This document shows, in pieces, positions 57,198 through 63,801 of a DNA stretch of 64,000 nucleotides (position 1 is its first letter; each line of letters begins with the position of its first letter). Under the pieces are notes generated by a model. The model worked only from the letters and a program-made list of their open reading frames with translations, was not told the DNA's origin and did not search any database. A program made the translations under genes and the position numbers. This DNA is from Perkinsus chesapeaki ATCC PRA-425 (lineage: Eukaryota; Protista; Perkinsozoa): contig JAAPAO010000118.1 in the NCBI GenBank assembly GCA_013115145.1, positions 1 through 64,000 of the forward strand. The letters run 5' to 3'.

Positions 57198-59104
57198 ATG
57201 GTTGATAAAACGATTGCATCTCAACCGACATCAGAGAAGGAAGAGCAATTCCGCGAGGCTATTCGGCAGTACTTCACATCCACGACACGGTGTACGGACG
57301 AGCAGCAGCAGAAAGTGAGCAGCAGGCTGGTAGAGCATCCACGTGTGGCATTCTGCCGTGTTTTAGGCCGATGGGAATATAGAGGAGAAGGTCGATGCAG
57401 CTGTACGAGAATTGAAGAAAACTTTGAGAGCTTCGCTTCTAGGTAGGGCGAGGATGGGGGAACTGCTCAATCAGTATCGAGAGGCATTTTAAGAACAAGA
57501 TTCGGGGGCTAGGGTCCATAGTTAGGACCGGAACTATGCCATATATCGTGATGAGCCGAATCCGCATACCATAGCGGTCCGCTAGAATATGCGGACTTGT
57601 CCGCTAGGAGCGGAGGCTGCCGGTCAGACACCACTCCCGATCGACTTGGTGCGGGATTTAGTACACGCAATTAGTTCTCATTGCTGCTCTACTCTGAAGG
57701 GTTTAGCTCTCCCAAATGCACATTCCGGTAGTCTCATTGATTCCGTCGTCATTTTCAGATGACAAAGACATGACGCGAGATGACATCTCCGAAATTATCC
57801 AGTCCATCCAAGCTGAGGACGAGGACCTCGACGCTACACTGAAATCAGATCACGGCGCAATTCTGCCTTTGATAGACGAATGGGTGTCCAGCTCGATACC
57901 TAGTACCCAAAGGAAGGGTATGCTGCTGTGTATTCGAGCCCTGCTCACACCGATGTCGTCGAATCCAGAGCTCCTGCAGTCCTTATACGACTCTGGCTTA
58001 GCAGAGCGAATCATCCTTACTGGGCTAGACTGCCGGGAATACTCTTGGTTGGCTGGTTTCCTATTAATGACGGAAAAAGAATCACCAATGAGTAGGGACG
58101 CCAAGCTGGAGGGCCTCTCGCAGAAGGATATGAATGCTCTCCGAGATGCCATGCGGAAGATCGAGGGAGGGCCGCGATTCATCCAATTTGGTGACGAGGA
58201 TCGCGTGCGAGTGCTACGACGGGCTGTGGGAACTAAGGAGGGCGTGAAGGCCCTGGCGAAGGGAAAGTGCTCGGTCGGCTTGGCTCTGCTTTGTATAGAT
58301 CAGAAGAATAGACCTGTTGTGGCTCAAGGAGGGCTCGGTGTCCTTCTTAAAGGGTTAGACGCTCCCAGTAGCGCAACGTTTGCTGATACAGCAGTGCTGT
58401 GTCGGCAAGCAGCTTGCCAGATTGCGGCATCGGTCGATCCACGGACGCTGACCTACGTCCAGAGCACGACGATTGCTATAGCGTGTCTAAAGCAAATACC
58501 GGCAGCCACGAACGAACTTGAAGAGTATGAGGCGGCGCGTGCCCTCGTCGGCATCACTTCTGTTGGGGCGGAGCTCCGGGACTTCATAGCGAATAAGGGG
58601 GCATGGGACATAGTGAAGGAGTTGGTGTTCAGTCCGAATGAGCGAGTTCAAGGGATGGCGCTGGATGTTTTGTGCAACCTTGTCTCCGCCGATAAGATAC
58701 GGTCTAGGTTTCTCGACTCGAGCGGTGCTGCACAAGAGGATTTCAGGATACTTACCGCGTTCGCTTCAAGTGATTCGGTGGAAATCCGGACGGCTGCTAC
58801 GGGAGCCCTTGCTAAACTGCTGGTTAGTGATGACGAGGACCGAGGCTTCCCGATCGCACACATGGCCTCCGCCAACAAGAATACCATCCCTTTACTGGCC
58901 AAGATACTTCTCAACGAGAAGGAAAATATGGGCGTTCGATACAGAGCTGCTTCGGCGGCAGAAGCCATTATAGTGTCCGAGGTTCAGGGGAGTCAGATAC
59001 TGATTGACGCATTCAGAAAATGCAACATTGGAGGCGAGGATCCCGAAAGCAAGGCCATGCAAGAGCTTGTAGAAGAGACTTTAAAAATGTGTGAAGATGT
59101 TTGA
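57198..59104 (+). CDS. UCS-domain (UNC-45/She4/CRO1-like) myosin chaperone
   Basis: ARM-like motifs RPVVAQGGLGVLL, RQAACQIAASVDP and EYEAARALVGITS...VQGMALDVLCNL match the UNC-45 UCS region. Confidence 0.75.
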
Positions 59105-61318: not shown

Positions 61319-62284
61319 ATGAGTTCCACCACTGGTATGAAGGTCACTCTCGTTGGTGCCTCAGGCGCTATCGGTATGCCTCTCTCTTTGTTGTTGAAGA
61401 TGAACACTATGATCACCGACCTTGCCCTTTACGATGTTAAACAGGCTCGTGTCCCTGTTGCTGGTGTTGCTGCTGATGACTCCCATATCAACTCGCCCGC
61501 CAAGGTCAAGGGTTATGCTGGTCCCGAGCAGATCGAGGCTGCCCTAACCGGCGCCAATGTCATCGTTTGCACTGCTGGTATCGCCCAAAAGCCTGGTATG
61601 TCCAGAGACGATCTCTTCAATGTCAACGCTGGTATCATGCGTGATCTCGCTACTGCCTTCGCCAAGTATGCTCCTAAGGCTGTTGTCTGCATCTTGTCGA
61701 ACCCTGAGACTTGCCTGGTTCCAATCACTGCTGAGGTTTACAAGAAGGCTGGTGTATATGACTCTCGAAAGATTGTTGGTATTACCACCTTGGATGTTAC
61801 TCGTGCCAGAACCTTCTATGCCGAGGCTACTGGTTTGGATGTCGAAAAGGTCGATGTCCCTGTTGTCGGTGGTCACGGTGGTTGCGCCATTCTTCCTCTC
61901 TTCTCCAAGGCCACTCCATACGTCAAGCTTGATGAGGATACTATCAACAAGCTTGATGAGCATGTTCAAAACGCAGTTACTGAGGTTGTTGATGCGCTCG
62001 CTGGTGCCGGCTCCGCTAGTCTTTCTATGGCTTACTCTGCTGCCCAGTTTGTGGATATTGTTATCCGAGGATTAAAGGGTGAATCCCATACTGCCTGCGC
62101 CTATGTCAACGAGCCCTATGAGGACGTACAGTTCTTCGCTCATATCTGCGTCTTTGGCCCTAATGGTGTTGAGAAGGTCGAGAAACTCGACAACTTATCT
62201 CCTCATGAGAAGGAGAGAATGGGCGAGACTCTCGCAAAGCTCCGTGAAGATATTAAGAGGGGACTTGATTTCATTGACCACTAA
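61319..62284 (+). CDS. Mitochondrial/glyoxysomal-type malate dehydrogenase-family enzyme with Gln at the Arg102 position; no presequence
   Basis: [51 protein letters not shown]. Confidence 0.93.
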   Translation: MSSTTGMKVTLVGASGAIGMPLSLLLKMNTMITDLALYDVKQARVPVAGVAADDSHINSPAKVKGYAGPEQIEAALTGANVIVCTAGIAQKPGMSRDDLFNVNAGIMRDLATAFAKYAPKAVVCILSNPETCLVPITAEVYKKAGVYDSRKIVGITTLDVTRARTFYAEATGLDVEKVDVPVVGGHGGCAILPLFSKATPYVKLDEDTINKLDEHVQNAVTEVVDALAGAGSASLSMAYSAAQFVDIVIRGLKGESHTACAYVNEPYEDVQFFAHICVFGPNGVEKVEKLDNLSPHEKERMGETLAKLREDIKRGLDFIDH

Positions 62285-62832
62285 GAGTAAATCTTATTTT
62301 AAAGGCTTAGGATGAGTTCCTTTCGCCGTTTCCGAAACACTTGGTAGTTACTGTTGTCGTTTCTTACTCCATTATTAATTACGTTACTCGTTCACACTAC
62401 CATCAGAGGTAGGTGTAGAACAACAACATAAAGTGGCCTAAGGCCCATATTACTGATAAGGTTTAGTAGCCTTTCATCACTGTTATTCGTTTAGTGTTGA
62501 GTTGGACAGTAAACGAAGTGAGGTGTGGACGTGGTCATTCGAGCAGGGCACGCATGTGCAAACGATTATTGTGCATGCGTGCAAAATCGATTCTCACTCT
62601 TCGCTGGTCTATTGGAGGTATTGTATACGAGCGATGGTCGTTTTTGTTGTAAGTTCACTTATAATCACCTCTATCGACTCGATAGTTGTTCGTGGTGATA
62701 CCACTCGTTCCATTCTGAGTAGTATTTGCCATCTTCGAATAGGGCGCGCCAGAAAGCCAGCTATGGCCATTCTTTACGCTACGTTGCGGATGTCTGGACG
62801 TTGTTTTCGCAGGTAGTATTTTGTTGTAAACT

Positions 62833-63801
62833 ATGAAGGTCTGTCTCGTTGGTGCTGCGGGTGGCATCGGAAGGCCTCTTGCCCTTCTGCTCAAGATGAA
62901 CCCTGAAATCGACGAACTTGCCCTCTACGATGTTCCCGGTGCACGATTCCCTATTCCAGGCTGCGTTGCCGATCTTTCTCATATCAACACCCCTGCGAAG
63001 GTCAAGGGTTATGAAGGCTTCGATCAGATAGCGGAATGCCTCACGGGCGCTGATATGATTATTGTCACTGCCGGTATCGCACAGAAGCCTGGTATGACCA
63101 GAGATGATCTCTTTAGTGTCAATGCCAGGATCATGCGCGACCTCGCTTACAAGTTCGCCAAGTATGCCCCTAAGGCCCTTGTATGCATCATGTCCAATCC
63201 TGAGACTGCTCTGGTGCCTATTACTTGTGACGTCTTCAAGCAGGTTGGTGTATTCGACAAGAGGAAGGTTATGGGTCTCATGAGCCTCGACGTGACTCGT
63301 GCCAGAACGTTCTACGCCGAGGCTTCTGGACAAGATGTGGAGAAGGTCGATGTTCCTGTTATAGGTGGCCACGGTGGTTGTGCTATCCTCCCTGTCTTCT
63401 CGCATGCCACCCCTTATGTCAAGCTCGATGATGACACAATTGCTAAGCTCGATGATCATGTTCAGAACGCTGTCACTGAGGTTGTTGACGCCCTAGCTGG
63501 CGCGGGATCAGCCACCCTCTCTATGGCTTACGCTGCCAACAGATTTACTCAGATTTTGATTGGCGCCTTGAAGGGGAGACCTGCTAAAGCATCTGCCTAT
63601 ATCGAGGAACCGTATCAAGATGTAAAGTACTTCGCCCATTACTGCGATTTTGGACCAGAAGGAGTGTCCAAGATCCACGAACTGAGCCTCTCTCCATTTG
63701 AGCAGTCTAGGTTACCTGATACACTTGACAAACTACGTAATGATATCGCCAGAGGGTTAGAGTTCATGAGAAGGCCATCACAGATTGTTCTCACTGAGTA
63801 A
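62833..63801 (+). CDS. Tandem paralog MDH-family enzyme, also with Gln at the Arg102 position
   Basis: [47 protein letters not shown]. Confidence 0.93.

Follow-up and report, generated by a model that had tools for sequence, protein, structure and literature searches.

A tandem pair of mitochondrial-type malate dehydrogenase paralogs in Perkinsus with glutamine at the specificity position: candidates for a changed 2-hydroxyacid dehydrogenase

The window analysed here, a stretch of 64,000 nucleotides that opens contig JAAPAO010000118.1 of the Perkinsus chesapeaki assembly GCA_013115145.1, carries two tandem genes on the same strand for mitochondrial-type malate dehydrogenases (MDHs) in which the arginine that governs substrate specificity has become glutamine. 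The two encoded proteins, 70% identical across 313 residues, belong to a clade of nine such Gln-type proteins from three Perkinsus species. Judging from their sequences, they are probably active dehydrogenases that have ceased to be malate dehydrogenases. The two genes and the codons in question are as follows:

61319 to 62284, + strand: copy 1, intronless gene for a Gln-type MDH-derived dehydrogenase; complete open reading frame of 321 amino acids (from the first ATG) plus stop
61586 to 61588, + strand: CAA, the Gln90 codon of copy 1 at the specificity position (Arg102 in lactate dehydrogenase numbering, Arg81 in Escherichia coli MDH)
62833 to 63801, + strand: copy 2, intronless gene for a Gln-type MDH-derived dehydrogenase; complete open reading frame of 322 amino acids plus stop
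63082 to 63084, + strand: CAG, the Gln84 codon of copy 2 at the same specificity position (Arg102/Arg81)

What has been lost at the active site of these proteins, and what has been kept? Both copies read AGIAQKPGM where their relatives read AGVPRKPGM. When copy 2 is aligned to the MDH of the E. coli K-12 genome, from which residue equivalences were taken throughout, Gln84 stands opposite Arg81, the counterpart of Arg102 in lactate dehydrogenase (LDH) numbering. In MDH this arginine contacts the C4 carboxylate of the substrate, and discrimination against pyruvate depends chiefly on it (PMC11461317); an arginine at this position is present in all known MDHs (Boucher et al., PMC4109310). Seven other positions in the same alignment compare as follows:

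Arg90 of copy 2, E. coli MDH Arg87: kept
Asn122 of copy 2, E. coli MDH Asn119: kept
Asp153 of copy 2, E. coli MDH Asp150: kept
Arg156 of copy 2, E. coli MDH Arg153: kept
His180 of copy 2, E. coli MDH His177: kept
Val214 of copy 2, E. coli MDH Gly210: replaced
Leu221 of copy 2, E. coli MDH Lys217: replaced

The nicotinamide adenine dinucleotide (NAD)-binding motif GAAGGIG and the NAD-specific Asp33 of copy 2 are likewise intact and, with the catalytic set, invariant across the clade. Set beside the enzyme MDH (EC 1.1.1.37), the proteins possess the catalytic dyad, the equivalents of Arg109, Arg171, and Asn140, and the NAD motif, while Gln stands in place of Arg102 throughout the nine-member clade, copies 1 and 2 included. 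A first-pass annotation of the window had described the region 61319-63801 as tandem mitochondrial-type MDH paralogs, with Gln at position 102 encoded by different codons, intact catalytic His and Asp and two other substrate arginines, and ALAG in place of the conserved AKAG. Its description is borne out: two intact open reading frames lie at these coordinates, the alignment places Gln84 on Arg81, the codons are CAA at 61586 and CAG at 63082, His180, Asp153, Arg90, and Arg156 all align with their E. coli counterparts, and the change to ALAG is K221L.

Copies 1 and 2 are members by descent of the mitochondrial/gamma-proteobacterial-type MDH clade, a placement on which score, phylogeny, and fold agree. 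Both contain the Pfam domains Ldh_1_N and Ldh_1_C and pass the eukaryotic/gamma-proteobacterial MDH equivalog model TIGR01772 (350.1 bits for copy 1 and 330.8 bits for copy 2, cutoff 273.05), on which an Arg-type Perkinsus paralog scores 397.1 bits. They fail the canonical L-LDH model TIGR01771 (94.3 and 85.8 bits, cutoff 303.55) and the protist LDH model TIGR01756 (27-32 bits, cutoff 486). The nearest proteins of solved structure are pig and human mitochondrial MDH and plant glyoxysomal MDH, the best being pig mitochondrial MDH 1MLD (E 2.9e-83). An AlphaFold (AF2) model of copy 2, with a predicted local distance difference test (pLDDT) score of 92.6, superimposes on mitochondrial, glyoxysomal, and E. 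coli MDHs (2DFD, 1SEV, 1MLD, and 2PWZ) with template modelling (TM) scores of 0.91-0.94. Could the proteins, then, still be malate dehydrogenases, the loss of Arg102 being compensated (e.g., by Arg90 or Lys85) and the other changes being neutral or lineage-specific drift? Scores above the curated MDH threshold, a fold indistinguishable from that of MDH, and the public annotation of the Perkinsus Gln-type genes as "malate dehydrogenase" favour this explanation; the evidence of conservation, given below, makes it improbable.

How is the Arg-to-Gln replacement distributed among relatives? In a word-index search of 5.8 billion proteins the top 15 matches were all from Perkinsus. When the best 120 matches were inspected at the specificity position, 113 had Arg and 7 had Gln, the latter all from Perkinsus (including copy 1 itself and a chimeric partial Perkinsus olseni model). 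That partial gene model, P0006, is an annotation chimera, in which a copy-1-type C-terminal end is fused to a copy-2-type start. The tandem pair is present, in synteny, in two other species:

P. olseni, L001 6443-7432 and 8001-8975: tandem pair, syntenic
P. marinus, L003 8001-8984 and 9454-10419: tandem pair, syntenic

All six coding sequences of the pair in the three species are intact and have identical signature motifs. The orthologs of copy 1 (P. marinus P0003 and P. olseni L001:6443-7432) are 88-89% identical with a ratio of nonsynonymous to synonymous divergence (dN/dS) of 0.09, and those of copy 2 (P. olseni P0001 and P. marinus L003:9454-10419) are 85-87% identical with a dN/dS of 0.03-0.04. 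A third Gln-type paralog, copy 3, is found in P. chesapeaki (P0004, on another contig of the same assembly, a gene of 984 nt), P. olseni, and P. marinus. Because synonymous divergence between orthologs is 0.7 to >2, near saturation, while dN/dS is 0.03-0.09, the genes must be old and under strong purifying selection. Synonymous sites are saturated, with dS values from 0.7 to >3 over the comparisons made. Gln102 is not an accident of chance: the seven Gln residues among the 120 matches all belong to Perkinsus, and the signature is invariant in the nine proteins.

The Gln clade has a single origin inside a Perkinsus-only radiation of eukaryotic, mitochondrial-type MDHs. In a maximum likelihood tree of 50 sequences (LG+C20), the nine Gln proteins form one clade with support of 100/100 on a stem of 0.43 substitutions per site, the sixteen Perkinsus MDH-type proteins together form one clade (100/99), and the Gln clade is sister to two Arg-type Perkinsus paralog groups (98/87). 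With the 14 signature columns removed, support is 100/99 for the Gln clade and 100/98 for all Perkinsus proteins together, and the sister relation is weaker (91/73). Nesting of the Gln clade within the Perkinsus radiation is further supported by a four-residue insertion after YD(V/I), which all Perkinsus members, both Arg- and Gln-type, have in common with P0019, the one environmental sister sequence in the alignment. The evolutionary half of the first-pass reading, an independent change at position 102 in the mitochondrial/glyoxysomal-type clade, therefore stands as a single-origin, selectively maintained loss of Arg102 (100/100). Its biochemical half, that the products are lactate dehydrogenases or other 2-hydroxyacid dehydrogenases, is what we infer from sequence.

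Is Gln84 an isolated change? We compared the nine Gln-type Perkinsus proteins with 109 Arg-type relatives, using copy 2 numbering. At seven sites the Arg-type relatives show 100% conservation, and all nine Gln proteins share a different, fixed residue:

P83A and R84Q: specificity loop
V124E and N125T: turn NPVN, which follows the catalytic Asn
T184A: motif of the catalytic His, changed from HAGxT to HGGCA
G214V: opening turn of helix 213-220
K221L: end of helix 213-220, AKAG to ALAG

Four further fixed changes (V82I, V101M, T127L, and A/S181G) affect sites that are 69-97% conserved in the Arg-type relatives, so that 9/9 Gln-type proteins share an unvarying signature of eleven residues, Gln among them. 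Outside the specificity loop, the main blocks are encoded in copy 2 at these positions:

63202 to 63207, + strand: Glu124-Thr125 codons (NPET, replacing the Val-Asn of NPVN(S/T))
63370 to 63384, + strand: His180-Gly-Gly-Cys-Ala184 codons; catalytic His kept, HAGxT to HGGCA
63472 to 63495, + strand: Val214-Leu221 codons (helix 213-220 in the model; G210 and K217 in E. coli)

Taken together, these changes remove two cationic side chains, introduce an acidic one, and add hydrophobic bulk. From the alignment and from known MDH and LDH structures, we infer that residues 124, 184, 214, and 221 line the substrate cavity. A net charge shift of about -3 in a more hydrophobic pocket would be expected to shut out dicarboxylates and to suit a monocarboxylic 2-oxo acid better. 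A co-fixed block of this kind would be expected if further changes were needed for Gln to work productively, and the apparently coordinated rebuilding of the pocket fits a change of substrate. The same observations bear on the possibility that the proteins are still MDHs: seven sites that never vary among 109 relatives changed together and were then frozen, unlike what drift would produce; close to the site where a dianion must bind, the proteins have exchanged two cationic residues for neutral ones and acquired an acidic one; no MDH without Arg102 has been characterised (PMC4109310); and Arg-type MDHs are already encoded by at least three genes of this genome. We therefore regard retention of malate dehydrogenase activity as unlikely, and consider it probable that the Gln-type enzymes gave up oxaloacetate.

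Whether the genome keeps a separate Arg-type MDH had been left as a check by the first-pass annotation, and it does: P0011 lies on contig 212 of the same assembly, and P0009 and L007:3458-4417 lie in tandem on contig 40. The Arg-type genes of P. chesapeaki are all intronless, have the motif AGVPRKPGM, and encode proteins 54-63% identical to the Gln-type ones. The Arg-type tandem pair on JAAPAO010000040.1 (L007:2001-2957 and L007:3458-4417) is spaced by ~500 bp; the whole MDH family seems to expand by tandem duplication. All six MDH-family genes of P. chesapeaki are intronless, in a genus in which ~69% of examined genes have introns (PMC3101222). Since this holds for the Arg-type members as well, intronlessness marks nothing special about the Gln copies. 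A retrogene origin of the intronless copies was considered and set aside: a search for relic spliced-leader sequence across the window, allowing ≤3 mismatches, found no match, and the Arg-type genes of the family are equally intronless. P. marinus has a malate:quinone oxidoreductase (PMC3879968), which could carry the mitochondrial malate step.

How might the Gln-type enzymes work? We propose that the three paralogs are cytosolic NAD-dependent L-2-hydroxyacid dehydrogenases that arose once in the Perkinsus lineage, through duplication of a presequence-less mitochondrial-type MDH followed by loss of oxaloacetate use. Going by the conserved residues, the chemistry would be unchanged: hydride would be transferred from NADH with the His180/Asp153 dyad, Arg156 would hold the C1 carboxylate, and Arg90 on the mobile loop would polarise the carbonyl, with Asn122 kept. 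The replacements fall in the region predicted to recognise the substrate's side chain: the arginine for the C4 carboxylate of oxaloacetate is Gln84, the invariant lysine is Leu221, Glu124 brings a new acidic group beside the catalytic Asn, Gly214, at the start of helix 213-220, is Val, and Thr184 is Ala. The proteins might instead be catalytically dead, or moonlighting pseudoenzymes with a structural or regulatory role, and there is some precedent in the family, where other non-Arg members of the clade (such as P0138 and P0260) have lost the catalytic His. In the nine Perkinsus sequences, which are under strong purifying selection, every catalytic and NAD-binding residue is present and none varies, which makes a pseudoenzyme very unlikely indeed.

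Which substrate, then, might have replaced oxaloacetate? Pyruvate/L-lactate is, in our tentative view, the single most likely main substrate, and a further convergent LDH our leading guess. In an alignment with four annotated bacterial L-LDHs from plasmid records, to which identity is 26-29%, the Gln clade matches the LDHs at Gln102 and at the Gly after the catalytic His; position 214 has left the Gly of MDHs, having become Val where the LDHs mostly have Ala. Several points weigh against the proposal as a whole or against pyruvate in particular. The Perkinsus proteins retain or have acquired KPGM, NPET, His-Gly-Gly, Thr215, and Leu221 where the LDHs have KPGE, NPVD, His-Gly-Asp, Tyr, and Lys; Glu124, Thr125, and Leu221 are peculiar to the Perkinsus Gln clade, and because Glu124 is without parallel in LDHs, pyruvate is not clearly predicted. 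MDHs engineered with R102Q alone are poor LDHs (PMC4109310, PMC11461317), the pocket role given to residues 124, 184, 214, and 221 is a prediction from alignment and from known MDH and LDH structures, and copies 1 and 2 still score above the TIGR01772 cutoff. Convergence on canonical LDH beyond residue 102 is thus largely rejected by the alignment with the four LDHs. The partial match means that the sequence argues strongly against oxaloacetate and does not single out pyruvate.

These same differences leave room for enzymes that are not LDHs and have other 2-oxo acids as substrates, be they aromatic, branched-chain, glyoxylate/hydroxypyruvate, or unusual ones. We consider this nearly as likely as pyruvate, though short of probable; it competes only with the assignment of pyruvate, not with the loss of oxaloacetate. 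The closest analogues would be the aromatic L-2-hydroxyacid dehydrogenase (AHADH) of Trypanosoma cruzi and the broad-specificity isoenzymes of glycosomal MDH (gMDH) in Phytomonas, and the three paralogs might differ in substrate. G214V, K221L, T184A, T127L, and V101M all make the pocket more hydrophobic, most of the fixed changes differ from the canonical LDH states, and the long maintenance of three paralogs, with internal branches of 0.35-0.43, suggests subfunctionalisation; MDH-derived enzymes that are not LDHs have a precedent in AHADH (PMC11461325). Against it, Gln is the canonical LDH residue, Val214 adds bulk rather than space and so speaks against large side chains, and the signature residues are identical in the three paralogs, so that differences in specificity would have to come from elsewhere. 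The aromatic and broad-specificity MDH derivatives are not known to use Gln. A more radical version, in which the enzymes are not LDHs and act on a class of 2-oxo acid new to the LDH/MDH superfamily, perhaps divided among the paralogs, seems to us rather unlikely. It is suggested by the loss of the equivalents of Arg84 and Lys221 together with the gain of Glu124, a combination absent from canonical LDHs; side chains that are neutral-polar, or even cationic as in the keto-analogues of basic amino acids, would fit such a pocket. Basic amino acids or their keto-analogues are plentiful in mollusc hosts.

How do the Perkinsus proteins compare with known systems? Their parent by descent is the mitochondrial/glyoxysomal/gamma-proteobacterial MDH (1MLD, 1EMD), with which they share 46-51% identity, the fold, and the catalytic and NAD residues. 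They differ from it in lacking the arginine for the C4 carboxylate, in ten further fixed replacements, and in having no presequence, and their genes are nuclear-encoded and expressed as spliced-leader mRNA. Unlike canonical LDHs, which sit in the tetrameric LDH branch, they fall in the usually dimeric MDH branch (PMC4109310). The superfamily phylogeny holds four independent origins of LDH, none from a mitochondrial-like MDH, and the three non-canonical ones do without Gln: the trichomonad LDH arose from a cytosolic-type MDH and has Leu102, the LDH of the Plasmodium group of apicomplexans arose from an alpha-proteobacterial LDH-like MDH and has a loop insertion with Trp107f, and the Cryptosporidium LDH has Gly102 (PMC4109310). 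In several MDH backgrounds Arg102Gln alone yields no specific LDH, owing to epistasis (PMC4109310), and R81Q moves E. coli MDH toward pyruvate while leaving it a poor enzyme that second-site loop changes improve (PMC11461317). As in Perkinsus, the convergent LDHs followed a lineage-specific MDH duplication in which the specificity residue was replaced in one daughter and an Arg-type paralog was kept. The Perkinsus case differs from the trichomonad, apicomplexan, and Cryptosporidium LDHs in its mitochondrial-like parent, its lack of a loop insertion, and its use of Gln, with an activity that is predicted from sequence. In particular, the five- to six-residue insertion in the specificity loop that marks apicomplexan LDHs is absent, the loop having the length found in Arg-type MDHs, and the ancestry is mitochondrial-type.

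Closer in scaffold are the metchnikovellids Amphiamblys and Metchnikovella, whose mitochondrial MDH, with Arg replaced by Tyr/Trp, has been proposed in silico to be an LDH (PMC6190962). They resemble Perkinsus as parasites in which a mitochondrial-type MDH has lost its specificity arginine; however, there the sole remaining MDH was altered and the new residue is aromatic, whereas Perkinsus has a three-paralog Gln clade beside its Arg-type MDHs and many extra changes. MDH-derived enzymes whose MDH activity is reduced or absent are known in other protist parasites; they include AHADH of T. cruzi, which comes from a cytosolic MDH and acts on other 2-oxo acids (PMC11461325), and the gMDH of Phytomonas, which belongs to the same broad clade as the Perkinsus proteins and has been linked to lactate production (PMC3916237). 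Both come from unrelated lineages and independent events and are biochemically characterised, whereas the Perkinsus enzymes are known from sequence. A literature and supplement search of limited coverage found no report of LDH activity, lactate production, odd MDHs, or these proteins in Perkinsus.

Is loss of the arginine peculiar to Perkinsus within this MDH clade? We searched 1.84 billion 50%-identity representatives exhaustively with a profile of the nine Gln proteins and inspected the best 150. The Perkinsus Gln clade was recovered as one representative at 648 bits and the next scored 356 bits; there were no close relatives outside Perkinsus among the 1.84 billion representatives. At the specificity position, 35/150 of the best representatives lacked Arg and had Q, L, Y, M, S, K, I, P, H, W, G, or E instead; Gln accounted for six of the 150, and a few of the non-Arg ones also lacked the catalytic His. 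Two of these, P0138 and P0260, read GGN/GGS at that point. Thus, Gln is not unique to Perkinsus in the clade, an idea we abandoned on finding six other Gln-bearing clusters and many non-Arg ones. Three Gln representatives (P0169, P0180, and P0195; 493-609 amino acids) read AG(I/L)AQKPGM and keep NPVNS, HAGxT, and AK; P0180 is named as the mitochondrial MDH of the eriophyoid mite Aceria tosichella. Because this group is nested in animal mitochondrial MDHs (support 97), it represents an independent and apparently undescribed Arg-to-Gln event in arthropods. The remaining three Gln representatives are long-branch singletons. Non-Arg variants, including Gln in eriophyoid mites, are therefore sporadic elsewhere in this MDH clade, which suggests that mitochondrial-type MDH has given rise, in environmental eukaryotes, to many candidate offshoots that are either neofunctionalised or pseudoenzymes. 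Among the non-Arg cases seen here, Perkinsus is the most elaborately remodelled.

Are the genes expressed, and where would their products reside? Four public runs carry the region at 99-100% identity: X1 and X2, which are small 2015 libraries, and X3 and X4, both 454 metatranscriptomes. Contigs of cDNA from X1 and X2 span the full copy 2 gene, from 62811 to ~63846, and those of X1 cover copy 1 at 61527-62068 and 62116-62289. The features that delimit the transcripts are:

62313 to 62810, no strand: intergenic spacer between copies 1 and 2; zero cDNA depth in all four runs
62811 to 62812, + strand: AG trans-splice acceptor of copy 2, where the cDNA switches from genome to Perkinsus spliced leader
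62813 to 62832, + strand: 5' untranslated region of copy 2, 20 nt from spliced leader to ATG, with no upstream ATG

The lack of cDNA from the spacer indicates that the two genes give separate mature mRNAs. Upstream of 62811 the X1 and X2 contigs read ...ACCGTAGCCATCTTGGCTCA, which together with the genomic AG is the exact 22-nt Perkinsus spliced leader PmaSL1, as published (PMC3101222). The protein begins MKVCLVG, and an in-frame stop lies one codon upstream of the ATG at 62833. Because the copy 2 mRNA starts 20 nt before the ATG and an in-frame stop precedes it, there is no targeting peptide. In copy 1 there is no in-frame ATG upstream of 61319, and none was found upstream in any of the six MDH-family genes of the genome. 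Neither copy has a C-terminal tripeptide resembling peroxisomal targeting signal type 1 (PTS1) or an N-terminal motif resembling type 2 (PTS2), as read from the sequence. The first-pass annotation was thus right that a targeting presequence is missing, as the spliced-leader cDNA establishes for copy 2 and the absence of an upstream in-frame ATG indicates for copy 1. Its further claim, relocation of the Gln copies to the cytosol, holds in part: a missing presequence is common to the entire Perkinsus MDH family, all six genes included, and cytosolic relocation therefore describes the whole family rather than the Gln copies in particular.

The X3 and X4 libraries (marine 454, labelled as reverse transcription PCR) show the same copy 2 junction with a dinoflagellate-type TTTT leader, CCATTTTGGCTCA, in place of the Perkinsus CCATCTTGGCTCA. 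A spliced-leader primer could be the source of the TTTT variant in these libraries, although this is a guess. The contigs concerned (62811-63234) match P. chesapeaki copy 2 with no base differences except one inserted C, behind 63165 in X4, which may be a sequencing error. Environmental spliced-leader libraries can thus contain transcripts of P. chesapeaki.

The evolution of enzyme specificity has its textbook example in LDH/MDH. If Perkinsus did switch away from oxaloacetate, it would provide a new natural replicate with Arg-type paralogs as a built-in control, and its 7-11 candidate epistatic substitutions could explain why R102Q alone fails in engineered MDHs. Should the enzymes prove to use pyruvate, which we hold to be possible but somewhat short of probable, they would represent a fifth independent origin of L-LDH. 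It would be the first to start from a mitochondrial-type scaffold, and no other convergent LDH has returned to Gln102. In either case this is an unreported Perkinsus instance of a known evolutionary theme, and probably of the re-invention of an enzyme, rather than a new kind of system. Perkinsus is sister to dinoflagellates and close to Apicomplexa, whose LDH derives from a bacterial MDH gained by horizontal transfer, so that the comparison between the two solutions is phylogenetically tight. The species are commercially important parasites of oysters and clams. Because the genes are annotated as MDH in all public Perkinsus genomes and pass the curated threshold, metabolic reconstructions of these parasites probably contain an error here. 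Good expression of the genes and a published transformation system for P. marinus (bioRxiv 10.1101/2021.06.11.447996) make the hypothesis directly testable.

What surrounds the gene pair differs between species on the downstream side. A DUF7802 gene directly follows copy 2 in P. chesapeaki and P. olseni (loci L001:9168-10924, of P. olseni, and L004:5697-6966), whereas in P. marinus a gap 3' of the pair is followed by a large NAD-glutamate dehydrogenase gene (GDH2-type; L003:14899-16984), whose product also matches ankyrin repeats. Upstream of copy 1 in the window, ~2.2 kb away on the same strand, lies an intronless open reading frame of 462 amino acids (57716-59104, + strand) of no obvious family.

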